This document shows positions 33,176-63,348 of a stretch of DNA of 64,000 nt, piece by piece. Source of the DNA: Heterodontus francisci (taxonomy: Eukaryota). The first letter of the stretch is position 1, and the number at the start of each line of letters is the position of its first letter. The notes under the pieces were generated by a model that saw nothing but the letters and a program-made list of their open reading frames with translations, did no database searches and was not told the origin of the DNA. Where the stretch lies: NCBI RefSeq assembly GCF_036365525.1, contig NC_090387.1, positions 76,817,300-76,881,299 of the forward strand. The letters run 5' to 3'. The position numbers and the translations under genes were made by a program.

Positions 33176-36100
33176 GTACCTGTTTATTCTCAAACCAACC
33201 GTGTCTTTAAAAACAATACCGTAATTAGTTACCATACTAGCCGAACTAAAATTAGTTCGTCCGTCTGTAATATTCTTTCTCTTTTGTATTTTCATGTAGA
33301 AGATGCTGTGAAGTGTACGGTTATGGAATGAATACAATCAACCAAACTTTAAATATATTTTCCAACAGCTGCTTCGGTCACTTTGATCAGCGTGTTTCAA
33401 ACTCCCGAACAAGTAATTACGTTAAACGGGACAGACATCACCTTTTACTGCGTAATCCCCCTTTCTGATGACAATTCAGGGGTCGAAGTACGTTGGTGGA
33501 AAAAGGGCGAGAATGAATATATGCAAACAGGAGTCGATAACAGAAAACAATTTGGTTTCAAAAATAAAGGAGGAGGTTTTTTCGCGTTGCTAAACGCGAC
33601 TTTCCAAGACTCTGGAGTCTATCACTGCGTAGTAATCCGTCAGGGAAAAATTATAGGAAATGGAACAGGATCAAATCTAACTGTATGTGGTAAGTGACCG
33701 ATGTGAACGGGAACGTCCAAATATATCAAATGTAGCTGTTTTGTCATTGTTATATTGCACCCGCTTTGATATTGTAAAACGTATATTGATACGTTTACAG
33801 TGAAACTCTGTACACAACTGCTAATTATGCGGCAAAATATTACCTGTCCTTTGCCGAGTTGCGTAAAACGCTATCAATATTAACAAGGTAACATGTTACA
33901 AATGCAATATACTGCGTATGCTAGAAATCTGAAATATATACAGAAATTGCTAAAAATGCGTAGCCGATTAGGTAATATCTGTGCAGAGGGAAACAGAGTT
34001 ACCGTTTCAGATTTATGACCTGCCATCAGTAAAATGTTACTGGATTCATCTCAAAATGTGCTTCTAACATCAGACTTCTGTTGATGGAAGCTGCGGAAAA
34101 ATGTCCAGATACGTGGATGACTGACTGAAATGTATTCCTACACGACACGGCTCTTGTTTGCACCGATGCTTTGAATGTAAGTGAGGTGTCACACTCTAAC
34201 AAAATTAATTGTCACATTCTGACAGACTGGTTCGCGTGACGGATTTCATATCACATGACATTAACTTTTAATCAATGGATTTTTCCAACAATCTGTCCAT
34301 GTACCAGAATTTCTCCACGTCTTTTGCCTCCAATAAATATAACATTCCGCAGAGACTGTGTCGCTGAAGCCCTCTGAGGTCGAACCGCAGGCAATTCCCC
34401 TCAGCCAATCTCATGCTCTGGCTATGTGAACTGCCCGATATCCACGACGGCCCTCATTTTATTACCGGTAATGGACAGATTATTCGTTTCTCTCGTGGGA
34501 TGACAGACAGACTTAGAATTAATAACAAACATGGATACACTCGAAAATAGTATTTTCCTCAGTAACGTCTCCTCGGTAACCTGATTTCCCCCATTTTCTG
34601 TTCCGCAGCTCCCCCAACCCCATTGAAGCTTTTCTCCAAGCCACCCCAGAACAATTCAGCTACGACTCTGCATCTTGTTTGTGAATCGGCTGCGTTTTAT
34701 CCGGGCGATTTCACCCTCGTTTGGTATAAAAATGGCACCAAAGTCGCAACTGGGATAAATCCGAAAAAATGGCAGAACGCTGAGGGACTTTATGAAGTTT
34801 CCAGCTCTTTGGAAGACATGCAGCCTGTGCCCAACGGGGCTGTTTACATCTGTTTGGTATCTCATATTTCCCTCCAGGTTCCCGCTATTGGCCTCTACGC
34901 GGTTAACAATTCATGCTCAGGTACGGGGTCAACAGGCCATATCGTGTGGTCAGCAATTTGTATATTCGGAAAGGAATTATCATAGTGTTTAATGATATCT
35001 ATTATCGTAAAGATAGTTTGACAATACTAAAGTAAAGAGAAAATTAACGTTTGATTGTAAAAATTGTTGAGCCGAACCTATTGTCAAACCGAAGTACCTT
35101 CTACCCTGAAACCGCCTGTTCAATCCTATTATTTTACATATCTTGCTTATTATTAATTATTGAAATTTGTCCTCTTGTTGAACTGACTTTATTCTTTCCC
35201 ATTATCTGTTTTCCTCTCATGACCTGCGGAACCAGGCTGGACAGTTTGTTTGTTTAGCCTGTGTGGTGCGATTCGCTGTGAATAGGCGACACCTCCATGA
35301 TACAGAGGTTTGGTTTGGGAACTTGTTTCATGCAGTTCCTTCGGAATGTGACCCCAGATTTGTTTCCCTTACAATTGGTTGCAACATGCCAGTTTATTGA
35401 TAACTAGTTTCCTGTAATTGATAAAGAACCGTGTGTGAATTTCAATTCCTGTTCAATAAATGCAGTCCACAGAATTGAGTTAGCATTTCAACCGAATTCA
35501 TACAATAAGCATTTTTTCTAAGGTAGTGGCGCGTCACGTGCCACAGTATTGTTACGATTGCATCAAACAATAATTTAAGAGCAAATGAAAAGCCAAGTAC
35601 AGGAAAAATCCTTTCTGTTCAGCGAAACTAACTCATTTGGAATTCTAATCCTCCCAAACCAATATTCAGAAAATCCGAAACTGGTATTCCTCCTCGCATA
35701 ATATTCCAGCCGTATGCATCCTTTGTGAGAAGTGCCATTTGCTATCAGATCCAGAAATATAAATTAAGATTCATTTCAAATAACCCTCTCCCTCGCCTAA
35801 TTGTTGTAAATATGGGCAGTAGTTTAACCAACAAATTATCTCAAAGTCTCGTTTTTAGGTAATGACTGAAACAAATTAGAACTCAGTACCAATCTTTTTA
35901 ATCTTGCAGAACCTGATGATAAATATTATTACATCTGGGGTTCTGGATGTGCAGTTGGTGGATTGGCGTTTCTGGTGTTCATGATTATAATTGGAACGAG
36001 ATGCAGTTTGAAGAATAAAGGTAAGTATTTCGTTATCGTTTGATTTTAATACAAATCTTCAGGGTAATAGCGAGAGCGTCCAGGGCGGTACAGAAAGAGA

Positions 36101-38716
36101 ATAGCGCGATTATTAATTAATTGTTAAAGTGATGTTATCTCATGCCACAAAGCAGAAATCGCTTCCTGCAAATAGAACTAGATTCAGCATCTTATATAAT
36201 GTAATAATTATCATAGAATCCGGTTATAAAGGATCTGATTATCTAGACATTACCAACGAAAACGCCCACTTTCTGGCAGATGATAAGCGAAATCCGATCG
36301 CTTGTTCCAGCACTTTGGGGTCTATGACTAGTTGAGTAAAGTGTTGTCAGAGTCCAGTCGCGAGCAAATGTACACGACTAATGAAGGTTTCCTGGATTCG
36401 GATTTCCAAAAAAGTTCGGAAAATGTCCTTTCACAAAATAACTGTGGATAAGAAAGCCTATTTTCTCCATCCAAAAATGTGGAATAATCCCCCTAATGTA
36501 GAATCCAACCATTTGTTAAGGGATCCCAGGACGATTGCCTCATTTGCTATATCTGAAAGTTTATTCTCTGTGCGAAGAAGAATTTCTTGACATCATTGCT
36601 AAAATGATCATTTGCTACATCTTTTAACCGGTTTCCCCACAGGTAAATATCTCATACAATACAGGAACTGTAATGTAGTGCTTTTCTGTTACTCCAGTGG
36701 TAATCCAATGGTCTGGATTTATAATCCAGAGAAGATGGCGGCAAACCTCGCCATGGCATTTTGAGAACTTAATTCAGTTTAAATAATTTGGAAATTTAAA
36801 AAAAAACGGCCTGGGTAAAAGACAAGTGACCATATTCTGTTGCATTGCCATAAAATGTTAAAAAATCAATTGATGACATTTGGAGACGGTGTAACGGGGT
36901 CTGGCACATTAACGACTCTGATCCTCCACCTGTGGCCTCTGAAGTGGTTTCGTACGCCGTCTATCTGTCTAAGGGCAACTAATGATGGACAATAAATACT
37001 GCCTTAGTCAGCGACACCCATATCCTGAGGAAGAATTAAGCAAAATTGTGGTTTAACTTTTTCTATATACGTAGTATTGTCATGTATTTCCATAAAATCA
37101 TGGTTCAGACGCCTCCTTTGCAGTTTAACAGATCCAGCTTATCCAGAGTGTCCGCATAACTCAACACCCTGACAATGGGAAATCAGCCTAGCGGCTCTTT
37201 GCGCTGGCACTAGCGCGTCACCATTGGTGACCAGAATTGGTCACAATATCCAGTGGTCCGTGCAGCTGGAGCACTGTACAGTTTCATTGCTCTCTCCTTT
37301 GACTTACATTATACTGTTTTGTCTATGTATTGGTTTTGCCCTTTGATGCTCTGCATTGGATGGACATGTTTAGCGTCTAGTCTACTAAATCCTAGGTCTC
37401 TTTCAGTTCCGTCCTTAGCTATTTCAATCCAATCCATGGAGTATATATGCAGCTTGTTTCTTTTTTTCATCCTGGCTGTAGCGCTTTACTCTTCTCTGAG
37501 TTGAATTTCATCTGACACTGCTCTGACCACCTATATAGGTATATATAAAGTCATGTCAAGCTTTACATTGCCTCTAAAAATACTTTTCAGAACACTAACA
37601 TGGAAACTGAAGAAATATTGTGCTTACTGAATGTAATTAAATTGCATTAATTTGCAGGTAAGCAGGAAAGTAGAACAATACTGAGCACGCATGAAGGACT
37701 GGTAAGTTCATGCCATTTTTCCAAGGAGAGGATTCCAATTTATAGAAATCTTGTTATGATAGAGATACTTTATCACAACCTATTTCGCAAAAGTATTTGT
37801 TTCTTTTCGATGTGTCATTCGCATCGCGTTTTGAAAATCATTTGAACCTGCGATGCTGGTGCAAGTGATTGAAGAGAAGAAAAATTAAATTGGTAGTTTC
37901 AGTCAACAAAATCTAGACAATACTTATGCGTGCATTCATCTAAACCTCGCTTTTGAAAGCTGGCATCACACCTCTAAGATGCAGAACCCGCCTCTTGTTT
38001 AAATATATCTGTAACATTGCATTGTAGTGAAAATCGACAAGATGAAATGGCAGTTACAATAGACACACTATTTACCGGACTTAACATTTGCATAACTTTA
38101 AATGTATTAACTGTGGATTTCTGCATTTTGTTTGTTGCCTAGGCCATTATGTTCATTGTTTGATCAGCAAGCTGTAAACTGGTGAAGGTAATGAACTCGT
38201 CAAATAACAAAACATTTTCTTATTGGTCAATGCAGGGGGAAGAGGACAAGATCGTGACTTATGCTGCAGTGGATTTGAACAAAGCCAAGAAAACTCCAGG
38301 ACGTAAACATGAAGAGGAGATGACAGCGTACGCTCAGGTGGGGCTGAGAAGCAGAGAATAGAAGCATACATATTCCGCGGAGCACCAACATTAATGTAAT
38401 AGCGGAGTATTAGTTGTTCTGACTTTGGCCGTATGCTGCATCTGAAGGTTTTTCTGTGTTATTCTATTGACTGCCTTGAGCAGTCAATGCCACGCCCAGC
38501 AAAGAGACAAATCAACCGTATTTCCAAACATTGTTTTTCCAGATAAAACAAGGGACGTTTCGGGACAAGGTGACAGAGGCGACTCCAGAATTGTCGGGCT
38601 CGAAGAAAGCGGGACAATCTAGAAATAACAGAAGAAGCGCAGAATATGCCGAGCTGGAGATAAAAACCACAAAAGGAGCAACAGAGGCTTTTTACACAGA
38701 AGCAAGAACCAATTAG
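33115..38716 (+). CDS. Gene A: type I membrane IgSF receptor (leader-VJ-C1-TM-cytoplasmic tail with Tyr motifs), SIRP-like/NCR3-related, about 340 aa; 6 coding exons: 33115-33175, 33369-33689, 34609-34920, 35910-36020, 37658-37701, 38543-38716
   Basis: All introns are GT-AG with phases 1,1,1,1,0. Exon lengths 61+321+312+111+44+174 = 1023 nt give an uninterrupted ORF ending in TAG. Every exon has a homologous counterpart in gene B. Confidence 0.88.
33369..33689 (+). CDS. Gene A exon 2: Ig V-set domain with in-exon J-like G strand
   Basis: Acceptor TTTTCCAACAG, donor G|GTAAGT. Motifs: ITFYC (B-strand Cys), VRWWKK (C-strand Trp), DSGVYHC (F strand), NGTGSNLTV (GxG(T/S)xLxV). Confidence 0.93.
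34609..34920 (+). CDS. Gene A exon 3: Ig C1-set domain
   Basis: Acceptor TTCCGCAG, donor G|GTACGG. C1-set signatures: LVCESAAFYPGDFTLVWYKNG, GLYEVSSSL, VYICLVSHISL. Confidence 0.93.
35910..36020 (+). CDS. Gene A exon 4: stalk + uncharged transmembrane helix (EPDDKYYYIWGSGCAVGGLAFLVFMIIIGTRCSLKNK)
   Basis: Acceptor TCTTGCAG, donor AAG|GTAAGT, 111 bp phase 1-1; hydrophobic run followed by basic stop-transfer residues. Confidence 0.9.
37658..37701 (+). CDS. Gene A exon 5: 44-bp cytoplasmic exon (GKQESRTILSTHEGL)
   Basis: Acceptor TTTGCAG, donor CTG|GTAAGT. Converts phase 1 to phase 0 as the last exon requires; same length as the gene B counterpart. Confidence 0.78.
38543..38716 (+). CDS. Gene A exon 6: terminal cytoplasmic exon with AEYAEL (ITIM/ITSM-like) and AFYTEA
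   Basis: Acceptor AAACATTGTTTTTCCAG, nearly identical to the acceptor preceding gene B exon 57388; open to TAG at 38714-38716. Confidence 0.85.
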   Translation: MKQGTFRDKVTEATPELSGSKKAGQSRNNRRSAEYAELEIKTTKGATEAFYTEARTN

Positions 38717-46460: not shown

Positions 46461-47457
46461 ACTGATATTGGGAGCAGCTGTATCAGATCGTCCTTTCAGC
46501 CTCAGAGAAGCAAAGGTCATTTAAATATTTCTGTAACTAGCTGGTGGCTCAGTAAGCAAATGATCCCTAAGATGCATAACTGAGTCACGCAGAACAGGAA
46601 TGTCACTTTTTCCCTAGGCCTGTGTTGTCTGTTGAAATAGTGGTTAGGTAATGTGTTTCTACAGTGCATCTCAGCTGTCGTGACCTCAGCTTGAATTTGG
46701 CGCATAGAGAAGATCAGGTGGTTATGTGACAGCTCCTACAATTTGATGTCCCACTAATGGACTAGGGAGAACAAAATGAAAGCTGTTTAGCTAATGCTCT
46801 TGCCTTTAATGACTGTTAGTGTTATCCCCAAGACTCATTGCGGAGTTCATCCGTCTGCAGTGCAGACTATATTTTAGATTATTTTACACTTTCCACTCCC
46901 TATCTTTCGATCTGTCCCTCATTTTCTCTTTCTCTCGCTTTAGCTGCAATCTGCTATCTGCAGTTGGGTCTCCAATCGCGCTGGGTTTCTATTTTTGGGT
47001 CTGAATTGCTTTCAATTTGACAGTGCTATTGTTTAAGAGCCATTTTTGGGGCTTACCTAATTAAATAGATGCTCATCCGTGATATTAACAATGAGGTGTA
47101 AATGCACCTTCTGATTACTTGGATTTGACGCACAGTTGATGCAAATTCAGGGGAGTATAAATATTCGTGTCAAGCTCCTTGAACATTCTGAGTAAAGCAA
47201 AATATTTCGGATGCTAGAAATCTGAAATAAAAAAAGAAAGTGCTGCAAATACTCAGCAGGTCTGGCAGCATCTGTGGAGAGATAAAGAGAGTTAACGTTT
47301 CAGGCTGATGACTTTAATGTGCACACGGGATAATAAGCTGTTGTTTAATAACATTCATCTGATTACAATTCTAGGAAACGTTCAGGCCTAGGCATTCATT
47401 ATCATTGTGCCTTGCAATAACACATGCCCGTCACAAGAAGCACCCTGCTGTAGAATT

Positions 47458-49561: not shown

Positions 49562-49616
49562 ATGTCTGCGAGGGCTGTGCTTCAGGGCATACAATTCATG
49601 GAGTTTATCTTCCTAG
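49562..49616 (+). CDS. Gene B exon 1: putative leader MSARAVLQGIQFMEFIFL
   Basis: ATG at 49562, phase-1 donor TAG|GTATTT, 119-bp intron containing (CT)n. Less hydrophobic than a typical signal peptide. Confidence 0.62.
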
Positions 49617-52600
49617 GTATTTTCCACTGTTCGCTCTGGTTTTTTTTTGTTTCTCTCTTGCTCTCTCTCTCTCTCTCTCTCTCGCTAAATCTCTCCCAGT
49701 GCTTTTTATAACTATAACTAAATTTTGTTTTTTAGTTGCTGCCGATATTCTGGTTGAAGTGACCCAGGTCCCTGAAAATATCTATTCGATCGTTGGTACA
49801 GATATTGCATTCAATTGCATATTTCCTACTTTTCAAGATGATTCAGATGTGAATGTTTATTGGTGGAAACTTGGCGGAAAGGAATTGATACAACCAGGAT
49901 CAGACAGTAGGAAACGTTTTGTCAATGAGAAAGGAAGAGCCTCCTTTCAACTTTTGAATGTCAGTGTCCAGGACTCCGGAGTCTATCACTGTGGAGTAGC
50001 ACATCTAGGAAACAGAATCGCAAATGGAAGTGGATCACAACTTGTCGTCAGTGGTAAGAGATGTGTAAAGACCGGATCTGCTGTATAGACTCACCGTTAT
50101 TCAAAATAAATGATAAAAGTATAGCATTCCCTTCCCCTGTCTCTGGTACTGCTTTAACATTTGCATTGGCAATCAAATACTTCAATAGATTTTAGTTATG
50201 AAATAACGTGTGGCACTCTGGGCTGCTTTTCAACCATCTTAATTAATTTAATAATAATTATTTCTGCTCTTTCATTCATTGCACAGGAAGCGTTTTCATG
50301 CCATTTCGGTGCGAATAAAGAATGTGAAATAACTTGAAAGGTTTTCAGTACAAATAATATTTCGGACAGTTACAAAGTAAATTTTGATGACCATCTGCAG
50401 TAGAAAGATCATGCTAAAAGTGTTGTTATTAAGTCGAAAGTCTAATTTCAAGACGAATTCAAAAGTTACTCTACGTGATTATTTTTGAATGCCGTGTTAC
50501 TGCTCTTCTTGTAGAATGCCCATTTATGTAGCACATTTGGTGCCCCGAGGCGTTTTAGTAACAATTAAGTGTTTTTGAAATGTAGTCACCTTTTTAATGC
50601 AGGAGAACGTGACAGCCAATGTACACCCAGCAATGTCCTACAAATAGAAATGAGATAATGACCAGATAGTTAATGATAGTGTTTGGAGGATAAATATTTG
50701 CCAGGGCAATATACTTCGCCGAATAGTGCTGGGGGATCCCTTATGTTCACCTAAGAGGTCAGAAGGGGCCGAGAAATAATATCTCATCCAAAGGACGGCG
50801 CTTTTTTCCTACAGTATAGCACTCCCTCCTACTGCATTGAAGGGTCAGTTTTGATTTATGTACTCAAGTCTCGGATTAGACTTGGAACTCACAATATTCT
50901 TACTCGGAGGTAATGGTGCTGCCACTCAGCTACGGTTACCACTGTATGCTCGAAATCTGAGGGATCAGACTCTCAGATGCCTGGCTGTATTTCCTGTTAT
51001 TCAATCAGTAGCTTCATTCAGCTCTTGGCTGACTGACACAAGAATTTTATTTGTCTCAAACCCCTTCAAAAACGGATATACCATCGAGAAAGAATTTTAT
51101 GAATGTGTCCCTGAGTTGTGCAAACGCTATTCGCCCCAATTCTTACATTTCAGTGAGAAATGTCTCTCACATGCTAAAGTAACCCTTGAAATGAAGGTTT
51201 TGCCTTGATTTAAATCCTCGATTGCGATGTTATACGTTCCTTGTAAATCGTGTAAGCAGTGGGACTAAACCCCATGCTGGAAATTGAATTCCTTTCGTGG
51301 TTGTGATTAATTGAGAGAACTTGTCAGTCAAAAATGCTATGCCGTCCCTGCTTATTTCTCAGATTACAGTCAGTGATAAAACGGGTGCTGTATGTAGGAT
51401 TGCAACTCCCCTGCTTACTGTAGGTCGCGACACAGTATGAGCACATTCTGGAGGGTTCGTCAGGTCGCAAATGGAGGGCATAGAATGTGTTCACAAACAC
51501 AGCTCTTATTCACTACAGAAGACGACCGAATGCTTCATCCATGCTTATTCGATTCTTTTACCTAATGAGGTAATACAGGAGAGTCAGGTTTGGAGATTTT
51601 ACACAGGGAACAATATAAATGCACTGAGTTTTATCATCTGGAATGCACCATCTGAAAGGGTGTTGGAAGCAGATTCAGTAGCAACTTCAAAAGGACATTT
51701 GGTAAATGCTTGAAGGGAAACATTTGCAGAGCTGCACAGTGGCGCAGTGGTTAACACCGCAGCCTCACAGCTCCAGCGACCCGGGTTCAATTCTGGGTAC
51801 TGCCTGTATGGAGTTTGCAAGTTCTCCCTGTGTCTGCGTGGGTTTCCTCTGGGTGCTCCGGTTTTCTCCCACATGCCAAAAGACTTGCAGGTTGGTAGGT
51901 AAATTGGCCATTATAAATTGCCCCTAGTGTAGGTAGGTGGTAGGGAAATATAGGGACAGGTGGGGATGTGGTAGGAATATGGGATCAGTGTAGGATTAGT
52001 ATATATGGGTGGTTGATGGTCGGCACAGACTCGGTGGGCCGAAGGGCCTGTTTCAGTGCTGCATCTCTAAACTGAACTAAGCTCTATGGAATAACTTAAG
52101 ATGGGCAGAGTGGCATTCTTCTGTGCAGTACCGCTGTATGCTTCTATAATCTACAGTAATTAATACCGCAATGTTTTCACTTCATCATTAACAAACAAAT
52201 TGATAGCTCTGTTAGGCTGTTATAGCCCACCCGAAATCATACCTCTCGTTTGGGAAAGGCCGCCATAAAGGTCAATGCCATTCTAAGTTCCAGAATAGAC
52301 GAGATATTAACTTTCTACTTCGACCTTTTACCAGCTCCCCCAACTCCGGTGAGGATTGTTTCCCAGGCATCTGAGAGTAATGTATCCGGTGCTTTGGCTC
52401 TCGTGTGTGAAATGGCTTCATTCTACCCAGAGGCACTAACTATCACTTGGTACAAAAATAATGTAAACGTTGAGACTGGAATACACACCACGAAACAACT
52501 TAGCAGAGCCGGAATGTATGAAGCTTCCAGCTATTTTGAAGAGGCACAGTCTGTCCAGGGAGGAACTGTTTACGTCTGTCTGGTTTCTCACGCAACTCTC

Positions 52601-54080
52601 CAGGTACCAGCCATGGCAATTTACTTGGTTCCTAATTCTAAGCCAGGTAAGATGTCATTTTTCTTAGAAAAACGAACATGTGACAGGGTTAGATTTCTTC
52701 CTTTCGTTATTGAAAGGGAAAGTGTTAGAAATTCCATTATTGGCGGTCGTATGGGTTGGAACGAACGGAGCGTTGATGAAACAAAGCGACTGTGGGAGAA
52801 TTTTACATTCATATAAAGCAGAGAAACACAATATGCCTAGACATACCTAACAGAGAAAGCCTTCACTAAAATAAGTTACGATATAACCACACGTAGTGGC
52901 AAGGGTAAATATTACTTCAACCAATTGACTCCTTAAAACAAAAACAAAAAATCAAATTTTAGTATCATCAGTAGAACCTGCTCCTGGCCCGCAGTGTGAA
53001 AAAAGGATATCGAGGCCATGGATCGGTTAGCTAACAAGAGGCATAGAGTAAAAAAAGGCTGAAATGAGCGGTAGCGCAAAATGGGCGGTCACGAATCAGC
53101 AGCCGGTTTTTCATTTCTTCTGATTGTTTTTCCATTAGCCCGCTTTCCACCGGTCAGTAAATATAACTTAGCTCCCCGCAATCACTCAGCCCCCTCCCCT
53201 CCACCCCCCTCCCCCGCTCAAAACCGCTTCGTTTAGTTTTAAACAGCGTTAAATGAATTTCTATCAGCTTACCCTTTGATTTCCAATGCTAAACTATCAA
53301 GAAATTGTTCAATATCAGATTCTTTTTACGGCTCTGACTGTCGATGGCACACTCCACAATGCGCAGCTCCATATATTAAAGTTATATTTATCTTACAGGC
53401 GGTGACAGCACCTCGCCCTCCACTTATTTACGGATATTTGGATGTATAGGGTTTGCATTGGCGTTTTTGGTGCTGATGACCGTCATTAGAACGTCGTTCA
53501 GATTCGTTAACTGTAAAGGTAAGATGTCACCCGATCGTTTAATCACAACCAGCAGAGACGGCTAGTTGGTAGCGAGAAAGGATTGATCCACGATTTCACT
53601 TAAAGGCTAAAAGTATTGTGGGCGCTGGAATAGAGCTATGGTGATTGTTGAATTGTGAAATCGGACTGTGGTCCTGAAATGCAGCATTTATCTTAGATTG
53701 GAATGAGCAGAAATGTGGATTGTACTCCCTCCCACCGCATAACGATCCGAAAATCGTCTCCCTGGCTTACACTAGATTAAATTTAGGAGGCGATGAACAT
53801 ATCCCAAATTCTTTGCTCTGTCGTTTAGGAAGAAATGTCAGGTTGTTTTCCGTAGGGAGCAATTATGCACTCTTATTTGTTAATTAACGGCATAAACGCA
53901 AATTCGGAAATTTTGCGAACTTTCCCGACTTTTTTTCTCACTGTAAATTAACATTCATGGTACTTGGAATGTATGGTTCCATTCATGGAACCATATCGTG
54001 CATCATTGGCAATGACGTTTTCTTTTTCTTTTGTTTTAGTAAGCAGACAGAGAAAGGATGAAGCAAACAATTGTGACTAG
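49562..54080 (+). CDS. Gene B: paralogous IgSF receptor (leader-VJ-C1-TM with Arg-short tail), about 281 aa; coding exons 49562-49616, 49736-50053, 52335-52646, 53399-53518, 54040-54080
   Basis: GT-AG phase-1 introns; 55+318+312+120+41 = 846 nt ending in TAG at 54078-54080. C1 domain about 50% identical to gene A (hand count 51/104). Confidence 0.82.
49661..49683. repeat. (CT)n microsatellite in gene B intron 1
   Basis: Directly visible. Confidence 0.9.
49736..50053 (+). CDS. Gene B exon 2: V-set domain with J-like strand
   Basis: Motifs IAFNC, VYWWKL, DSGVYHC, NGSGSQLVVS; acceptor TTTTTAG, donor G|GTAAGA. Confidence 0.93.
50510..50933 (-). mobile_element. Old Deu-domain SINE (SacSINE1/AmnSINE-like) in gene B intron 2
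   Basis: Minus strand begins TAGCTGAGTGG (A box) ... GAGTTCCAAGTC (B box-like). The central region resembles the Deu domain from memory; not database-verified. Confidence 0.55.
51734..52080 (+). mobile_element. tRNA-derived SINE (HE1/V-SINE-like) in gene B intron 2
   Basis: A box TGGCGCAGTGG 51740-51750, B box GGTTCAATTCT 51784-51794; 3' end resembles CR1 tails. Confidence 0.92.
52335..52646 (+). CDS. Gene B exon 3: C1-set domain
   Basis: LVCEMASFYPEALTITWYKN ... VYVCLVSHATL; 312 bp, same length as in gene A; donor G|GTAAGA. Confidence 0.93.
53399..53518 (+). CDS. Gene B exon 4: stalk + TM with Arg (GGDSTSPSTYLRIFGCIGFALAFLVLMTVIRTSFRFVNCK)
   Basis: Acceptor TCTTACAG, donor AAG|GTAAGA; shares GC....LAFLV.M with the gene A TM. 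Confidence 0.88.
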
Positions 54081-54083
54081 TCT
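54040..54083 (+). CDS. Gene B exon 5: 44-bp cytoplasmic exon with in-frame stop (VSRQRKDEANNCD*)
   Basis: Long polypyrimidine tract + TAG acceptor, donor TCT|GTAAGT, same size as gene A exon 5; TAG at 54078-54080. Confidence 0.75.
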
Positions 54084-54275
54084 GTAAGTTTCTAACAGTT
54101 ATGCGATTGATATTTTAAGTGCAATGTGATAATTTTGTGCTGAGCTGAGAACATGTCAAATCTACTTCTGACTTATTTTACATGTTTGCTGTTTATGCAA
54201 CGTCGTATGCTTCCCTAGTTAACCACAATTAAACTGGGACATCAATCCTTTTCTGAATGAACTCCTCCCAAGTCA

Positions 54276-54487
54276 CAAAATGCTGGAAATACTCAGCAGG
54301 TCTGGCAGCATCTGTGGAGAGAGAAGCAGAGTTATCGTTTCAGGTCGTTAACTCTTGTTCATGTCGTTAACAACCTGAAACGTTAACTCTGCTTCTCTCT
54401 CCACATATGCTGCCAGACCTGCTGAGTATTTCCAGCATTTCTTGTTTTTATTTCAGATTTCCAGCATCCGCAGTATTTTGCTTTTAC
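54276..54487. repeat. Inverted pair of the Penelope-LTR-like repeat forming a long palindrome
   Basis: AAATGCTGGAAATACTCAGCAGGTCTGGCAGCAT... is mirrored by ...ATGCTGCCAGACCTGCTGAGTATTTCCAGCATTT. Confidence 0.8.
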
Positions 54488-55773
54488 TCCCAAGTCAAGG
54501 TTGGCGCAGAAATCCTACCGAAATCCTTTGCCCAGGCATTAAGTCCACTCAGTCCCCCCAGGTCCAGGAGTACAGTAATTTTTGACAATCCCAAAACTAC
54601 AGTTTAAAAACAGCCCCAATGTAGGCCGGTTCCATGGTAGCATCTTGTACCCGGTTATCAAGGGAGGGAATTTGAGGTAGGCTCCTCGCCGCAGGGTTCG
54701 GAGAACAGCAGCGAACAGGCTTTCCAGTCAGGTGAACGGTTTGATAACTTGTATCCAACCTTACTCTTAGGGTTCTGCTTTTTTGATGGAAGGCGTTTTT
54801 CGCCGGTCCAGTCTGAGGAGAGGAGAGGTCACAGCGAAAATCTAACACCCTCCTCATGCAGCATCCCTGCTTCTAGATATCGAAAACTTTTCGTATAGAA
54901 AATAGGCAGAAAAGCAGAAGCGCCCTCTTCCACCTAATTTCCATGAGTAGATTGGACTGCAGCTACTGCAGTCGTTCTATCCCAGAGCAAAGTAATGGGG
55001 GTTAGGCCAGGCGTAATTAGCCACTGTCCTTGTTTTCCTGACCAACGCACCTAAAGACAAAGCATTTCACTAGGGCAAAGTTCTGGAAAATGAACTTTAA
55101 ACGGAACGTTTGGATGGTTTATTCTTAAGACTTGATATACTTTTCTTCTGAGAGTATCGGGTCAGTTTCAGTTTGTCGCAGCCCTGCACCAGCAAGGAGT
55201 TTCTGCCCATCCCCCCAGGACGAGCTCCCAATTGAAATTAGAAAGCCAGCTTTGTGCCCTGCAAGAGAATTTTTAAAAGTTCGCACGGAACATTTGCTAG
55301 GGCCAAGCGCAATGAAAAAACAATACACCACCTTATCAGTTTACGTTTATTTTAATGCACCATGTAAGTCTGCCTTGCTGCACACAGAATGGGTTTTAGA
55401 TTTATGCTTCACGCTTTGGGTTCCGTCGGTGTCCTGAAGGCGGATGTACCGTTAATATTTCAGAGGTTTAGCGTGCTCCTGGATGTTAAATGCGAACTTT
55501 TATGTCGATGGTCACTTAAAACCACATCGCCTCGATGGAACTCGCAGTATTTCCCATATTATAACTGTACGTCAAAATGACTCAATGGCTGTTCATTTGG
55601 GCGAGCTGAGGTCGTGGAGGACGCTCTATAATATATATTTTTCTTCCTTTTTTTTATAAATACTGTTTGAAAATATTTTTCAGTGTTTGGAAATAATATT
55701 AGGTTCATAAGGCCTTACTAATACTTATGTCGCTACATTGATAACTGGGATAAAAGGTTTTAGTTTTGAGGAT

Positions 55774-56676
55774 TGTTACCACGGAGACGGGAGGAGTGTA
55801 CTGTTTTTCTCTAGTTCCACTTCTCCACGGGTCACAACATATATTTAAATGTCTACCCAGATACCGACATTGTCAATGACCCACACTATTCTATTTCAGA
55901 ATAAAATCCGCCAGCCAGGTTTCTTTAGACAAACAACAAAATTAATAATTTATTATAAAACAATACCTATTTGGTAAAGATGCAAAGCATTAACACATAG
56001 ATTGAAATATGAAAGTTCCCTTTTAAATTAGCCCAACACACACACGCGTCAGTTAAAGAAAATAGAAAGACGTTTTCTCTGGAGAGATCTCTTCACAAAA
56101 AAAAACAAAAAAAAAAACACTTTGGCCAAATACTTGTTAATGATGGAATGATATCAGTTGTCCCTTTATTCTGGCGTCCAAAATATGTGTCATAGGTATC
56201 TTTTTGGAGCAGTTCTATTCAGGCGACGTTGAGGATTAGTCTGGCAGGCTTTCCAGGAAAAATGTAGCATCAGGAGTTTCAGGTATCACACTGAATTGTC
56301 CGGGTTTCGCAGCGAGATGGGGAAAGGGTGCATTGGGAGCTTCTCCCAGGAGGTTGCAATCCCAACTGACTCAAAAAAAACTTCAAAACAAAACCAAGTC
56401 TTGACCACCATAAATCTTGACATGTCACTTCTCTGTAAACAATTTTCCTCGGTCACCAAGGTTTTTGCAGTTACTTAGCTGAAGAAATGTGACTTCCAGT
56501 AAGTGTGTTTTTAAAGCAAGTCCCAAAGTCCTTCCAGGGACCTATTTTTTTTAAAAACAAAAACAATGTTCAATATCTATGGAAATTCTTCAGTCCTCCA
56601 GATGAATACATTTTCACAATTCTAAAACACGAGTCCTCAAAAATTATTTTTAAAAACTTGAAGCCCTTTCCTAACA
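55774..56676 (-). mobile_element. Solo LTR with 4-bp TSD GGAT in the last intron of gene B
   Basis: TGTTA...TAACA termini; GGAT at 55770-55773 and 56677-56680. Confidence 0.85.
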
Positions 56677-57387
56677 GGATGGAGCAGAGAACCTTTTTTT
56701 TAAACGAACACAAGTAAGGTAAAAAAAAATTCTCATAGGTGTTCAAATTTTGAAACATTTTCGGAAAATAAATGGGGGAAATGCACTGACCATGAGACAG
56801 TATCTGGAGGGCGTAAATCTAACATCATGAACAAAAGAACCGAGTCATAGGAGAATATTTCTTAGCTGTTGGAACATGGAATCCCCTCCCAGAACAGGTG
56901 ACAGCATAATTATAAAAGATTTTACAAGAGGCGACAACTATTTCAAAACTAAAATAAGCAAGTGGATATGAGGAAAAGACAGGTGAATGGGACTAAATGG
57001 ATACCATGTTCGAAGAACAGGTATAGGCACCAGTATGTAGAATTCTACCACTCTAGCACGATATCAAACACGTGACTCGTGAAACCTTGGCTGTAACGAG
57101 CATTATATAGAGTATTTTGAGGACATTATTTTGATTATTTTGAAACTATGCGAGCAACCATTATGAATTTTGGGACACTCTATAGCCTTTTCTAAAAAAA
57201 ACAAAGCACTTACTGTAGGGGAATGGATGTTAAGATAATCATATTGCCTGAGGTAAGTAGCTGATCCAATAATATAAATATACAAACCCAAAGACTCTTC
57301 AAATATCATGATGACCATACTCTGTTTTATGATATATTCTGTGGATTAACGAAGTTGAGATAATTTTTCAAAACATTGTTTTTATAG

Positions 57388-57573
57388 ATCTTACAAGAAG
57401 CAGTTGATAACTCACAGTCTTACGCAGCCGTCGAACTGCTTAGTTCTTAGAAAAATTGAAAACCTAGAAGGAAAGAAAAAGGCACAGAATACGCAGAAAT
57501 AAAGACGGTAGATCAAAAGAGAAAAGTGCCGCTCGTCTACACAGAACCAAGTTTCAAATTATACCAATTCTAG
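57388..57573 (+). pseudogene. Gene B fossil terminal exon (former ITIM/ITSM tail, now predicted 3' UTR)
   Basis: Reads ILQEAVDNSQSYAAVELLSS*KN*KPRRKEKGTEYAEIKTVDQKRKVPLVYTEPSFKLYQF*. Aligns without gaps to gene A exon 6; internal stops at 57448-57450 and 57457-57459; acceptor conserved. Confidence 0.85.
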
Positions 57574-59600
57574 CTGTAGACGCCTTTTCCTTCTTTACAG
57601 TGGCCGGATCTATTTACGGGACATGGGATGTCCTCTGTTCTCGTCAACGTCGGTCCCTATTATCACCCATGCTAATTGCAGCCCAATATTACAACTAAAG
57701 CTTTACCGGTGGCCGGGATTTTGCTGTAGTAATGCGGTCAAAGCTGTCAATATTCCCTTTCATTACTTTACTGAAACTGACAACGACTTTGGTAGTCCGC
57801 ACATGCGCAGAAGAAAGCGGAAACCCAGAAGTTGGCATCAGCAGGTGCATGCTCCTGTTTAGGGCTGTAGAGGTCTCCACAGATTGCAATTTCCTTTGTA
57901 ATCAAGATTTGACGAAAACGTTCTCTTCCCGGCTGTTAGTCTGTCTGTAAAAGTCCTTGGGAACATTTCTACCTTGCTGGATTAGGGTTTTTAACAGCGT
58001 ACTAACTTCATCATTACTGCTAAGCACTGACTGGCCCTGAAAGGCAAATTTTATATCTGTGGATTCCGAAACTTCTCTATTGCGATAAAAATGCCACATA
58101 TTTCTTTTTTAAAGTTTGCTAATATTGATATTTTAGCTTCTTTCTAAATCCAACCGAAACATTTATCTCCCTATCTTAACATTTAAATGAAAAATGGTTT
58201 TAACTTCCTAATTTTCTGTGTGTGAAACTTCCATGTGATGGGCTGTTTAACTGCTTGCTGACATCACCACTGCTGCAGGCGAAACCATCTTCTTGATTTG
58301 GTGCCAGATTTAAACTGCCATCGGAAAAGGTGAAAACTACATAACAGAGATGGCTCGATCTATGTGGGCAACTTTCTTCGAGGTCAGTGGCGAGGGCCAT
58401 TGCTTCGCTGCTGATGGGAAAATCATATTGCGTCCTGCGATAACATATACCAAGGGCAAGTGGGTTCTTGATGTAGTCTTCATCACGCTTTGCATTTATG
58501 AATTTAATTTTACCCATGCAGAACTCATCTATCTCACACTTCCCAAATTATACAGTTTCAGATGTTTATTTCAAATAAACAAAAATAAATGATATTTGAG
58601 GAGAGGTTTAAAAGTTATGCTGTTGGTGGTCGTGTTCCAAAGGCTGTGTCAGCTATTGTCTGGCTACTGCGGCGTAATTCACTATAGGACTTATTGAAAA
58701 GCATCTCCTAGCTCCTCACCCTTTACGCGGGAGCCCGATGAGAGCAGCAACATCAAGTTCTGCTGCCAGTCACACTCCATTCTGTCTTGGTGATAAGTCG
58801 ACATTTTTTCGTTCGGTTTGGGTCAAAATCTTAACATTCCCTAGCTAACCATTCTCAAAAAGACAGTAACGTTTTAAAATGGTCTATCAACACTTTGTAC
58901 AGAGCAATTAGGAACGCAAAATGAATACAAACTTGCAGATGCCACCTACAGTCCGAGAATACATAAGGGAAGATATTTCCTTGTACAAAGACTGATCGGA
59001 AACATGGACTGAGGGTACTGAAGTGGAGGTAACACTCAGAAATAATTTCAGGGACAATTACTTTCTGTAATAGGTAAATGCGGGTTTTCAGGTGGCTGAT
59101 CTAGAACAGACCAAGTGGTATTTCAGATAAAGCTAAATGTTCAAAAGTTTTAGGTTTATCTGAAACTTATCTTCACCCCGGCTACACAACTGAAGGTATA
59201 AATAAAAACTAAAGATTATATTAAAGTTTACTGTTTATTATCTTGCATTTACACTTCAACTACCGATCTGAGAGCAGTAGATGTAGTATAAGATTATTAC
59301 GGATTAATTTACTAATAGTTGTTCGAATGATTCATTGACCATTATACCGTTGTAAGGATAGGACCCTGTCTTTGACAATGCGGTAATTTGAATAATTCTA
59401 AATTGAAACTGCATGTATGGACAGATCTTTCTGTCCATATAGGGTGATGGCCTTAGGGAAGCGCATGTCATTAATGAAAATTTAAACTTAAGAGCCAGAT
59501 TAGCAATTACTATTATCTGTACAGGATCAATAAACCAAGCTAATAACTATAACAAAAAGTAACTATCGATCAATGAGGATATATCTGCAAGATGTTGGCG

Positions 59601-62600
59601 AGGGGCAGTGTCCTAGGCCCAACCATCTTCAGCTGCTTCATCAATGACCTTCCTTCAATCATAAGGTCAGAAGTGGGGATGTTCACGGACGATTGCACAA
59701 TGTTCAGCACCATTCGTGATTCCTCAGCTACTGAAGCAATCCATGTCGAAATGCAGCAAGACCTGGACAATATCCAGGCTTGGGCTGATAAGTGGCAAGT
59801 AACATTCGCGCCACACAAGTGCCTGGCAATGACCATCTCCAACAAGAGAGAATCTAACCATCTCCCCTTGACATTCAACGGCATTACCATCGCTGAACCC
59901 CCACTATCACATCCTGGGGCCTACCATTGACCAGAAACTGAACTGGAGTAGCCATATAAATACCGTGGCTACAAGAGCAGGTCAGAGGCTTGGAATCTTG
60001 AGGCGAGTAACTAACCTCCTAACTCCCCAAAGCCTGTCCACCATCTACAAGGCACAAGTCAGGAGTGTGATGGAATACTCTCCACTTGCCTGGATGGGTG
60101 CAGCTCCAACAACACTCAAGAAGCTCGACACCATCCAGGACAAAGCAGCACGCTTGATTGGCACCCCATCTACAAACATTCACTCCCTCCACCACCGACG
60201 CACAGTGGCAGCAGTGTGCACCATCTACGAGATGCACTGCAACAATACACGAAGGCTCCTTAGACAGCACCTTCCAAATCCGCGACGTCTACCACCTAGA
60301 AGTGGCCATTTCGGAGACATGGGTAGAGCAGGGGCAGGAATGGATGTTGCAGGTTCCGGGATTTAGATGTTTCAGTAAGAACAGAGAAGATGGTAAAATA
60401 GGGGGGGTGGGGGGTGGCATTGTTAATCAAGGAGAGTATTACAGCGACAGAAAGGACATTTGAGGACTCGTCTACTGAGGTAGTATCGGCCGAGGTTAGA
60501 AATAGGAGAGATGAGGTCACCCTGTTGGGAGTCTTTTATAGACCTCCGAATAGTTCCAGAGATGTAGAGGAAAGGATAGCGAAGATGATTCTCGACAGGG
60601 GCGAGAGTAACAGGGTAGTTGTTATGGGGGACTTTAACTTTCCAAATATTGACTGGAAATACTATAGTTTGAGTACTTTAGATGGGTCAGTTTTTGTCCA
60701 GTGTGTGCAGGAGGGTTTTCTGACACAGTATGTAGACAGGCCAACCAGGGGCGATGCCACATTGGATTTGGTAATGAACCCAGCCAGGTGTTAGATTTAG
60801 ATGTAGGTGAGCACTTTGGTGATAGTGATCACAATTCGGTTAGGTTTACCTTAGCGATGGGCAGGGACAGGTATATACCACAGGGCAAGACTTATAGCTG
60901 GGGGAAAGGAAATTATGATGCGATTAGGCAAGATTTAGGATGCGTAGGATGGGGAGGGAAACTGCAGGGGATGGGAACAATCGAAATGTGGAGCTTATTC
61001 AAGGAGCAGCTACTGCGTGTCCTTGATAAGTATGTACCTGTCAGGCAGGGAGGAAGTTGTCGAGCGAGGGAGCCGTGGTTTACTAAAGAAGTTGAAGCAC
61101 TTGTCAAGAGGAAGAAGAAGGCTTATGTTAGGATGAGACGTGAAGGCTCAGTTAGGGCGCTTGAGAGTTACAAGCTAGCCAGGAAGAATCTAAAGGGAGA
61201 GCTAAGAAGAGCAAGGAGAGGACACAAGAAGTCATTGGCGGATAGGATCAGGAAAAACCCTAAAGCTTTCTATAGGTATATCAGGCAGAAAAGAATGACT
61301 AGAGTTAGATTATGGCCAATCAAGGATAGTAGTGGGAAGTTGTGTGTGGAATCAGAGGAGATAGGGGAAGTGTTCAGTGAATATTTTTCGTCTGTACTCA
61401 CAGCAGAGAAAGAAAGTGTTGTCGAGGAGAATACTGAGATTCAGGCTACTAGGCTAGATGGGATTGAGGTTCACAAGGAGGAGGTGTTAGCAATTTTGGA
61501 AAGTGTGAAAATAGATAAGTCCCCTGGGCCAGATGGGATTTATCCTAGGATTCTCTGGGAAGCTAGGGAGGAGATTGCAGAGCCTTTGTCCTTGATCTTT
61601 ATGTCGTCATTGTCGACAGGAATAGTGCTGGAAGACTGGAGGATAGCAAATGTTGTCCCCTTGTTCAAGAAGGGGAGTAGAGACAGCCCTGGTAATTATA
61701 GACCTGTGAGCCTTACTTCGGTTGTGGGTAAAATGTTGGAAAAGGTTATAAGCGACAGGATTTATAATCATCCAGAAAAGAATAAGTTCATTAGTGATAG
61801 TCAGCACGGTTTTGTGAAGGGTAGGTCGTGCCTCACAAACCTTATTGAGTTTTTAGAGAAGGTGACCAAGCAGGTGGATGAGGGTAAAGCCGTGGATGTG
61901 GTGTATATGGATTTCAGTAAGGCGTTTGATAAGGTTCCCCACGGTAGGCTATTGCAGAAAATACGGAAGTATGGGGTTGAAGGTGATTTAGAGCTTTGGA
62001 TCAGAAATTGGCTAGCTGAAAGAAGACAGAGGGTGGTGATAGATGGCAAATGTTCATCCTGGAGCTTAGTTACTAGTGGTGTACCGCAAGGATCTGTTTT
62101 GGGGCCACTGCTGTTTGTCATTTTTATAAATGACCTGGAAGTGGGTGTAGAAGGGTGGGTTAGTAAATTTGCGGATGACACTAAGGTCGGTGGAGTTGTG
62201 GATAGTGCCGAAGGATGTTGTAGGGTACAGAGGGACATAGATAGGCTGCAGAGCTGGGCTGAGAGATGGCAAATGGAGTTTAATGCGGAAAAGTGTGAGG
62301 TGATTCACTTTGGAAGGAGTAACAGGAATGCAGAGTACTGGGCTAATGGGAAGATTCTTGGTAGTGTAGATGAGCAGAGAGATCTTGGTGTCCAGGTACA
62401 TAAATCCCTGAAAGTTGCTACCCAGGTTAATAGGGCTGTTAAGAAGGCATATGGTGTGTTAGCTTTTATTAGTAGGGGGATCGAGTTTTGGAGCCACGAG
62501 GTCATGCTGCAGCTGTACAAAACTCTGGTGAGACCGCACCTGGAGTATTGCGTTCAGTTCTGGTCACCGCATTATTGGAAGGATGTGGAAGCTTTGGAAA

Positions 62601-63348
62601 GGGTGCAGAGGAAATTTACTAGGATGTTGCCTGGTATGGAGGGAAGGTCTTACGAGGAAAGGCTGAGGGACTTGAGGTTGCTTTCGTTGGAGAGAAGGAG
62701 GAGGAGAGGTGACTTAATAGAGACATATAAGATAATCAGAGGGTTAGATAGGGTGGAAGTGAGAGTCTTTTTCCTCAGATGGTGATGGCAAACACGAGGG
62801 GACATAGCTTTAAGTTGAGGGGTGACAGATATAGGACAGATGTTAGAGGTAGTTTCTTTACTCAGAGAGTAGTAGGGGCGTTGAACGCCCTGCCTGCAAC
62901 AGTAGTAGACTCGCCAACTTTAAGGGCATTTAAGTGGTCATTGGATAGACATATGGATGAAAATGGAATAGTGTAGGTCAAATGGTTTCACAGGTCGGCG
63001 CAACATCGAGGGCCGAGGGGCCTGTACTGCGCTGTAATATTCTAATTATAATTATAATTCTAATTCTAGAAGGACAAGGGCAGCAAATACATGGGAACAT
63101 CACCACCTGCAAGTTCCCCTCCAAGTCACACACCATCCTGACTTGGAACTATATCGCCGTTCCTTCACTGTCGCTGGGTCAAAATCCTGCAACTCCCTTC
63201 CTAACAGCACTGTGAGTATACCTACCCCAAATGGACTGCAGTGGTTCAAGAAGGCAGTTCACCACCACCTTCTCAAGGGCAATTAGGGATGGGCAATAAA
63301 TGCTGGCCTGGCCAGCGTCGCCCACATCCCATGAATGAATAAAAAAAA
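59601..63348 (+). mobile_element. 5'-truncated CR1/L2-group LINE split by a CR1 insertion
   Basis: GSVLGPTIF..FTDD and MEYSPLAWMGAAP before 60302; resumes at 63066 and ends in an A-rich tail. Confidence 0.88.
60303..63065 (+). mobile_element. Young CR1 LINE, nearly complete ORF2, with 7-bp TSD CTAGAAG
   Basis: 694-aa ORF with RT (FADD) and endonuclease remnants upstream in other frames; CTAGAAG at 60296-60302 and 63066-63072. Confidence 0.94.

Follow-up and report, generated by a model that had tools for sequence, protein, structure and literature searches.

Loss of an inhibitory tail in the horn shark: a VJ-C1 receptor gene of Heterodontus francisci that has probably been retained in short-tailed form

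Receptors that come in inhibitory and activating pairs are a characteristic feature of innate immunity in mammals, birds and bony fish; less well documented is how early this mode of evolution began. A 64,000-nucleotide (nt) stretch of the horn shark (Heterodontus francisci) genome (contig NC_090387.1, 76,817,300 to 76,881,299, forward strand; the whole stretch is referred to as the window, its positions are counted from its first letter and its letters include no N) holds two tandem + strand members of one immunoglobulin (Ig)-superfamily gene family, here called genes A and B, the remainder being mostly debris of long interspersed nuclear elements (LINEs) and reverse transcriptases. Gene B consists of six exons between 49562 and 57573, with a transcript that reaches beyond 58.2 kb, and it carries premature stop codons in the exons that encode its cytoplasmic tail. 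Is gene B a dying gene, or a receptor that has shed an inhibitory tail and stayed in use? On balance we regard it as a short-tailed receptor made by truncation of its tail, and probably a retained and functional one.

A splice-site search yielded a single model of gene B with AG/GT at all internal junctions (Table 1), and its translation is identical, residue for residue, to the NCBI protein P0001, a 'natural cytotoxicity triggering receptor 3 ligand 1-like [Heterodontus francisci]' of 281 amino acids (aa) that was recovered by a protein search with the C1 exon. P0001 ends in VSRQRKDEANNCD, at the exon-5 stop of gene B, and the truncated product is already annotated as a protein by NCBI/RefSeq. 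Gene B exons were joined only for translation and alignment, with X at the stops, and P0001 and other database proteins served as whole-protein queries. A preliminary description of the locus had placed all three premature stops in the two cytoplasmic exons, with the leader, V, C1 and transmembrane (TM) exons open and their splice sites intact, and the P0001-matching model confirms this: the 805 nt of these exons (55 + 318 + 312 + 120) are open, the in-frame stops are TAG 54078–54080, TAG 57448–57450 and TGA 57457–57459, and the frame ends with TAG 57571–57573. The position given there for the first stop also holds, as TAG 54078 lies 3 nt before the exon-5 donor (GT at 54084) and hence before the last exon junction.

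The preliminary description had named an absence of the stops from reads and a lack of expression as what would speak against it. The reads come from one sample and one individual, probably the assembled one; four runs are of DNA type, and three small ones behave like RNA. The RNA-type runs X5, X6 and X7 and the DNA run X1 were compared with 52250–58200 (5951 letters) as contigs, which give no expression levels, transcript ends or minor alleles. X5 holds one contig of 2669 nt (depth 27.8) whose pieces match 52334–52643 (C1), 53396–53516 (TM) and 57388–58200 (exon 6 and 3′ untranslated region, 3′UTR). Between the TM and exon-6 pieces are 46 letters, corresponding to the 44-nt exon 5 and 2 letters that fit either junction side, and the bin depths of 6.01 and 0.42, equal to 27.8 × 43/199 and 27.8 × 3/199, place the exon-5 piece at 54038–54083 with no differing letter. 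X6 has the same structure of C1, TM, exon 5 and exon 6 at depths of 6.3 and 4.8, and X7 has nothing on the gene B exons within 52250–58200. Intron bins such as 54837–55632 have a depth of 0 in the RNA-type runs and of ∼9 in the DNA run; the X5 and X6 contigs are therefore transcripts, not DNA. All three stops are present in the RNA-derived contigs of two libraries as well as in DNA contigs, with no alternative letters, so that both concerns are answered by the reads: gene B is expressed and is correctly spliced through exons 5 and 6. The X5 contig continues for ∼996 nt past 58200, to ∼59.2 kb, and an AATAAA stands at 59201. The sole differing letter reported in 52250–58200 is 52551 C>T in the X5 contig (T in X5; C in the genome, X1 and X6), which turns TCT into TTT and so replaces Ser197 of the C1 domain, a Pro in other sharks, by Phe; a second allele, RNA editing or an error could lie behind it.

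The 50–55 nt rule of exon-junction-dependent nonsense-mediated decay (NMD) is established in mammals and is assumed here for the shark. Because TAG 54078 is only 3 nt before the last exon junction, the mRNA should escape NMD by this rule; such an escape would account for the stability of gene B mRNA, and the spliced mRNA is consistent with it.

What the tail was before the stops arose can be read from orthologues, all of them automatic gene models. Judged from their sequences, the tail of gene B is ancestrally inhibitory in sharks, because the orthologues of Chiloscyllium and Scyliorhinus torazame keep an open immunoreceptor tyrosine-based inhibitory motif (ITIM) together with an immunoreceptor tyrosine-based switch motif (ITSM). 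The Chiloscyllium plagiosum orthologue P0006 (327 aa) has the open tail ANRQGNDEASHCGNS/TFQETIDNSLTYATVQPVSSMKNGNPRTKEKGTEYAEIRNVHQKR and the S. torazame model P0004 the open tail VTYAEVELIRSKKNGNPPGKEKSTVYADIRNVRKER, both following the pattern (L/V)TYA.V and T.YA.I, that is ITIM and ITSM, which bears out the inhibitory origin previously proposed for the tail. Gene B, read through its stops, aligns to Chiloscyllium free of gaps over exons 5 and 6, and the orthologue residues opposite the three stops are K or N (in exon 5, Lys in two and Asn in a third), K or M, and G. The ectodomain is homologous to those of ITIM/ITSM-tailed relatives, with identities of 58–73% to orthologues and of 40–48% to paralogues with LTYAAL/TEYAEI tails. 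The Mustelus asterias model P0003 ends in LTYAEVELIGS at the codon of the gene B stop 57448, keeping the ITIM without the ITSM; this may be a convergent truncation at a Lys codon or a limit of the gene model.

The exon-6 frame of gene B reads ILQEAVDNSQSYAAVELLSS, stop, KN, stop, KPRRKEKGTEYAEIKTVDQKRKVPLVYTEPSFKLYQF, stop, and all of the motifs earlier described as retained, QSYAAV, TEYAEI and LVYTEP, are indeed present. In the ITSM, TEYAEI, every letter is intact. QSYAAV, however, departs from a canonical ITIM, and its reading as a preserved one was rejected, as its position –2 is Gln where the orthologues have Leu or Val. LVYTEP represents the C-terminal YTE motif of the family, which is also found at the ends of gene A (AFYTEARTN) and of a Heptranchias relative (TIYTETKIT), and the two open-tailed shark orthologues end just before this motif. 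Translation confirms that neither of two conceivable splicing changes would restore the ITSM frame, as had been claimed: skipping of exon 5 (a 53518/57388 junction) would give a protein ending in NCKDLTRSS, and use of the CAG acceptor at 54044–54046 (exon start 54047) a 50-aa tail in another frame and without the ITSM. The hypothetical exon-5-skipped end resembles the ends of ray orthologues (CKDL, CRDR); no read evidence for such an isoform was found in the contigs compared over 52250–58200.

Within the window gene A, on the + strand with a V exon near 33.4 kb and a final exon at 38543–38716, offers an open counterpart of this exon. The two genes share only 65–67% nucleotide identity over their V-set and C1-set exons. 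The gap-free alignment of the dead B exon with the last exon of gene A, noted in the preliminary description, was reproduced with 89/174 nt identical, a value that 0/2000 shuffles reach, and where B has its two exon-6 stops gene A has AAG and GGA, a single base away from TAG and TGA, respectively. Exon 6 of gene B also aligns gaplessly to the preceding cytoplasmic exon of gene A (52% nucleotide identity), a consequence of the internal duplication of the family tail, whose repeated unit has its two tyrosines separated by 23 residues (Y-23-Y); of the two gene A exons, 38543–38716 is the true counterpart.

In a maximum-likelihood tree of 23 ectodomains, horn shark gene B falls with Chiloscyllium, Cetorhinus, Mustelus, two Scyliorhinus species and three rays (Pristis, Mobula, Hypanus) in a clade with 100/100 support, and gene A lies far outside it. 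The B clade includes rays and excludes A, and the A/B duplication therefore predates the shark–ray split. The earlier proposal that the truncation is much younger than this duplication agrees with the tree and with the dead exon, which still matches Chiloscyllium at 28/45 residues with no indels.

The product that remains has one V-set and one C1-set domain according to Pfam, as does that of gene A. An AlphaFold model of the 281-aa product (mean predicted local distance difference test score, pLDDT, 83.7) is confident for V and C1 and has a helix at 235–275 that contains Arg240, five residues into the transmembrane helix; all that follows from it is that the retained part has no visible defect. 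The hydrophobic core of the TM is followed by a cytoplasmic stub of 22 residues without tyrosine (TSFRFVNCKVSRQRKDEANNCD), and as TAG 54078 ends the protein at residue 281 the translated tail is without ITIM or ITSM.

A basic residue in the TM helix of a tail-less receptor invites the idea that gene B has gained an activating-type feature in the horn shark. This was rejected, as the position of Arg240 is R or K in 8/9 B-clade proteins with a TM exon (Q in Mustelus), including open-tailed members: the Arg is also found in the sharks that keep ITIM/ITSM tails, and rays have Lys (YLKVFGC) exactly where sharks have Arg (YLRIFGC). The comparison thus indicates that the lineage has long had the TM charge, which did not arise along with the horn-shark truncation. 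The inhibitory ancestor that had been proposed stands as far as the tail is concerned, but not as a plain inhibitory type, given the Arg or Lys in ITIM/ITSM-tailed sharks and short-tailed rays alike. The annotated ray orthologues end 2 residues after the TM exon (CKDL, CRDR) and are all short-tailed. The B lineage was thus already of charged-TM type before the truncation, and if these ray annotations are right tail loss is recurrent in it, the tail having been dispensable in at least one other branch. Among 55 members of the wider family, an embedded basic TM residue is found with 10/27 motif-less tails versus 3/28 motif-bearing ones (Fisher p = 0.029, uncorrected), tail and TM having been scored automatically with a few rows misclassified, e.g. 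P0005 and P0167.

Whether the ectodomain and TM have remained under selection since the tail was released, as the preliminary description held, is the point on which the two answers to our question divide, and here the claim is weakly supported. The end branch of Heterodontus B (0.18) is the shortest of the deep shark lineages (Chiloscyllium 0.41, Cetorhinus 0.34). At conserved sites, defined as those that do not vary among the other sharks and agree with an outgroup, Heterodontus-specific changes affect 10/90 positions in V + C1 (mostly conservative, of I/V type) and 0/10 in the TM, within the range of other species. In a stop-target test, which counts single-base paths to a stop (102 upstream, 33 in the tail) and assumes equal rates for all stop-creating changes, the probability under whole-gene neutrality that all 3 stops fall in the tail is 0.015, the stops being confined to the last 60 codons, and given a first stop in exon 5 the probability that both later stops fall in exon 6 is 0.037. 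Together these data are suggestive only of continued selection on the ectodomain and TM of gene B. Several considerations weigh against a retained receptor. The stop-location p-values (0.015–0.04) are modest; the dead tail, at 28/45 to Chiloscyllium, is no more diverged than live tails are mutually (21/39), and the truncation may therefore be recent, in which case the intact upstream open reading frame (ORF) has little power; young pseudogenes are commonly still transcribed and spliced; the stops are known from one individual's reads; the short tails of rays and of S. canicula are known from annotated proteins and may be annotation choices; and in phylogenetically independent pairs tail type and TM charge are not significantly associated (median p 0.5).

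Much of this would fit a young unitary pseudogene, in which the exon-5 stop killed a tail-dependent receptor and the whole gene is drifting, its upstream part open through little time and slow shark change and its mRNA persisting thanks to a promoter and splice sites that remain functional. Three stops and an ITIM broken at position –2 are what such a gene would show, a tail exon no more diverged than live ones fits a recent event, and the stop distribution departs from neutrality only at the p-values given above. However, 2 further stops in 26 exon-6 paths point to a time span long enough for several to be expected in the 102 upstream paths, where 0 are seen; the untouched conserved TM sites and the short ectodomain branch likewise speak for constraint; ray orthologues are annotated as naturally short-tailed, so that ectodomain and TM may be usable without a tail; and the assembly of cleanly spliced mRNA at depth 27.8 in one run means that transcription and splicing are not lost. 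We consider it rather unlikely that gene B is such a pseudogene. An improbable alternative is that the stops mark a null or short allele that is still segregating, or are an artefact of the single animal, and that other horn sharks have an open inhibitory tail. All DNA and RNA runs covering the locus come from one sample, and the nonsynonymous difference between RNA contig and genome at 52551 means that the locus may be heterozygous, but the stops appear in DNA-type contigs and two RNA-type libraries with no alternative letters, three independent stops together with a decayed ITIM on a single haplotype speak for a long-standing condition and not for a recent variant, and the NCBI model, identical to P0001, ends at the same stop. 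We would be most surprised if the main product were instead a secreted V-C1 protein made by read-through of the C1 donor, to which the state of the tail would be irrelevant. The frame is open for 170 nt past this donor (52647–52816), the NCBI model P0002 of Cetorhinus maximus is exactly such a read-through with a similar peptide, and low-depth RNA contigs lie in intron 3 (52681–53195); the deepest contigs (27.8 and 6.3), on the other hand, splice C1 to TM, and the intron contigs, at a depth of 3–4, resemble pre-mRNA.

With gene B taken as a truncated and retained receptor, the following course of events can be proposed. Gene B represents, in H. francisci, an old lineage of non-rearranging VJ-C1 receptors that sharks and rays share and that has a conserved TM Arg/Lys; its shark ancestor had a cytoplasmic tail with ITIM and ITSM, for which the last exon coded. 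On the way to the horn shark a sense codon of the 44-nt exon 5 became TAG, ending translation at residue 281, and the former tail exon passed into the 3′UTR, where it is decaying, with two further stops and a change from Leu to Gln at ITIM –2, no indels and the letters of the ITSM intact. The V-C1-TM product should be unable to recruit SH2 phosphatases or SAP-type adaptors via tail tyrosines. Arg-bearing receptors in mammals pair with adaptors that carry an ITAM (immunoreceptor tyrosine-based activation motif); by analogy, the product might signal through Arg240 and an ITAM adaptor, or it might act as a signal-less competitor of its tailed relatives for ligand, and an activating function via an adaptor we infer from this analogy only. 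More tentatively, and with somewhat less than even confidence, the B lineage could be a ∼300-million-year-old 'dual' receptor that combined an outer-TM Arg/Lys with an ITIM/ITSM tail on a VJ-C1 scaffold and shed the tail independently several times: entirely in the rays, via the exon-5 stop in the horn shark, and perhaps partly in Mustelus, at the codon of stop 57448. If this is true, truncation already drove the evolution of paired activating and inhibitory receptors in cartilaginous fishes.

The features of both genes are collected in Table 1.

Table 1. Coordinates of gene A and gene B features within the window
Feature	Position	Strand	Basis
Gene A preceding cytoplasmic exon, ITIM VTYAAV and TAYAQ/I	38168..38337	+	5′ boundary inferred; alignment to P0156 ...GEEKKTLTYAAV...TPYAQVKQG
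Gene A last cytoplasmic exon (IKQGTF...SAEYAEL...AFYTEARTN, stop), open homologue of gene B exon 6	38543..38716	+	Gapless alignment; matches P0156 and P0011 tails
Gene B exon 1, start codon and split leader (MSARAVLQGIQFMEFIFL)	49562..49616	+	Exact match to P0001 residues 1–18; donor GT
Gene B exon 2, V-set domain, germline-joined J-like end (NGSGSQLVVS)	49736..50053	+	Pfam V-set E=1.8e-08; AG/GT; pLDDT >90
Gene B exon 3, C1-set domain	52335..52646	+	Pfam C1-set E=4.7e-13; spliced RNA contigs X5 record 9, X6 record 15
Gene B exon 4, stalk, transmembrane helix with Arg240 (CGG 53431–53433) and start of cytoplasmic stub	53399..53518	+	Model helix 235–275; RNA contigs join C1
Gene B exon 5, 44 nt, VSRQRKDEANNCD, then TAG 54078–54080, then S	54040..54083	+	End of annotated 281-aa protein; RNA contigs
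Gene B exon 6, fossil ITIM/ITSM tail, today 3′UTR	57388..57573	+	RNA contigs X5 record 9, X6 record 20: 0 other letters
Gene B 3′UTR continuation	57574..58200	+	X5 record 9, positions 997–1809 = 57388–58200

The tail of gene A comprises two exons that form a duplicated ITIM-23-ITSM unit, and the second unit has lost its first tyrosine (KVTEATPEL versus LTYAALEL in relatives); past the donor CAG/GTGGGG (38337/38338), read-through leads to an in-frame stop at 38358 that might be taken for the gene's end. In S. torazame an NCBI model of 413 aa (P0166) fuses a gene-A-like V to a gene-B-like V-C1, a hint that the catshark, too, has A and B side by side in this order and that their synteny is conserved. 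Intron 5 of gene B contains a short hairpin-like repeat with two inverted arms of ∼60 nt (54277–54489), with copies at 47190–47304 and 33900–34013; its depth is 1e5–2e6 in DNA-type and RNA-type runs alike, and it looks like a miniature inverted-repeat transposable element or a short interspersed nuclear element. LINE-type reverse-transcriptase ORFs or fragments lie at 30.1–32.5 kb, at 44.0–45.8 kb (– strand) and at 59.6–62.8 kb, the last including an open ORF of 694 aa (60701–62785), and the NCBI paralogue model P0012 has a reverse-transcriptase fragment fused to its N-terminus.

Beyond the window, an exhaustive profile-free search with the V exon gave 108 cluster representatives below 1e-10. 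Of the 20 representatives whose cluster names were looked up 19 are chondrichthyan, the exception being a top-scoring multi-Ig-domain protein, a turtle NCAM2, and the chondrichthyan relatives bear four inconsistent automatic names (SIRP-like, tapasin-related-like, NCR3LG1-like and Ig-lambda-like). A protein search with the tail only (P0006 residues 240–327) gave no match beyond the query, and a literature search for a name or description of a shark VJ-C1 family with ITIM/ITSM found nothing. The locus also indicates that a VJ-C1 receptor family of both tail types extends across the chondrichthyans, at present only in the form of inconsistent automatic annotations.

Two known groups come close in architecture. 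Many relatives carry the automatic NCBI name 'tyrosine-protein phosphatase non-receptor type substrate 1-like' (SIRP), and the family resembles SIRP in that a V domain bearing a J-like G strand precedes the C1-set part and in that members with an ITIM are paired with short-tailed ones. Identity with SIRP was nevertheless rejected, as one C1-set exon lies between V and TM, compared to the V-C1-C1 arrangement of SIRP. No SIRP chain is among the best 60 solved-structure matches to P0001, which are led by antibody heavy chains and CD276. With regard to B7-H6 and other B7 ligands, the group to which the NCBI name of P0001 (NCR3LG1-like) refers, CD276 matches residues 28–230 with E = 2e-17, and the antibody heavy chains score higher. 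UrIg and UrIg2 are non-rearranging VJ-C1 genes of elasmobranchs (PMC12227049, PMC10751288), with nine C1-type domains in nurse shark UrIg2, a multi-C-domain drawing for UrIg and no mention of ITIM or ITSM (PMC12227049). Gene B shares with them a single-exon, non-rearranging VJ, a split leader and a following C1-set domain; it differs in having just one C1 and in being part of a multigene family with ITIM/ITSM, and identity with UrIg/UrIg2 was rejected on domain number.

The closest likeness in mode of evolution is to the paired receptors. Activating KIR, LILRA, SIRP-beta, PIR-A and activating CHIR/NITR are short-tailed receptors derived from ITIM-bearing relatives. Gene B, like these, shares its ectodomain with ITIM/ITSM relatives, has had its inhibitory tail removed by a premature stop, has a basic residue in the outer TM helix and sits in a tandem cluster that mixes long- and short-tailed members. 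In contrast to KIR and the others, which are built on C2/I-set domains, its scaffold is the antigen-receptor-like VJ + C1-set, and its TM charge, which occurs together with ITIM/ITSM in some sharks, is hundreds of millions of years older than the loss of the tail. That combination recalls the dual receptor of KIR2DL4 type, in which a TM Arg is joined to a cytoplasmic ITIM: the open-tailed shark B orthologues P0004 and P0006, which probably resemble the ancestral state of gene B, likewise combine an outer-TM Arg with ITIM/ITSM, although the shark B proteins have no sequence relationship to KIR2DL4. The event in gene B is unsurprising in kind, being the familiar derivation of a short-tailed receptor from an ITIM-bearing one; what the horn shark adds is a clean and datable example, in which the state before is kept in orthologues and in a fossil exon and the state after is expressed.

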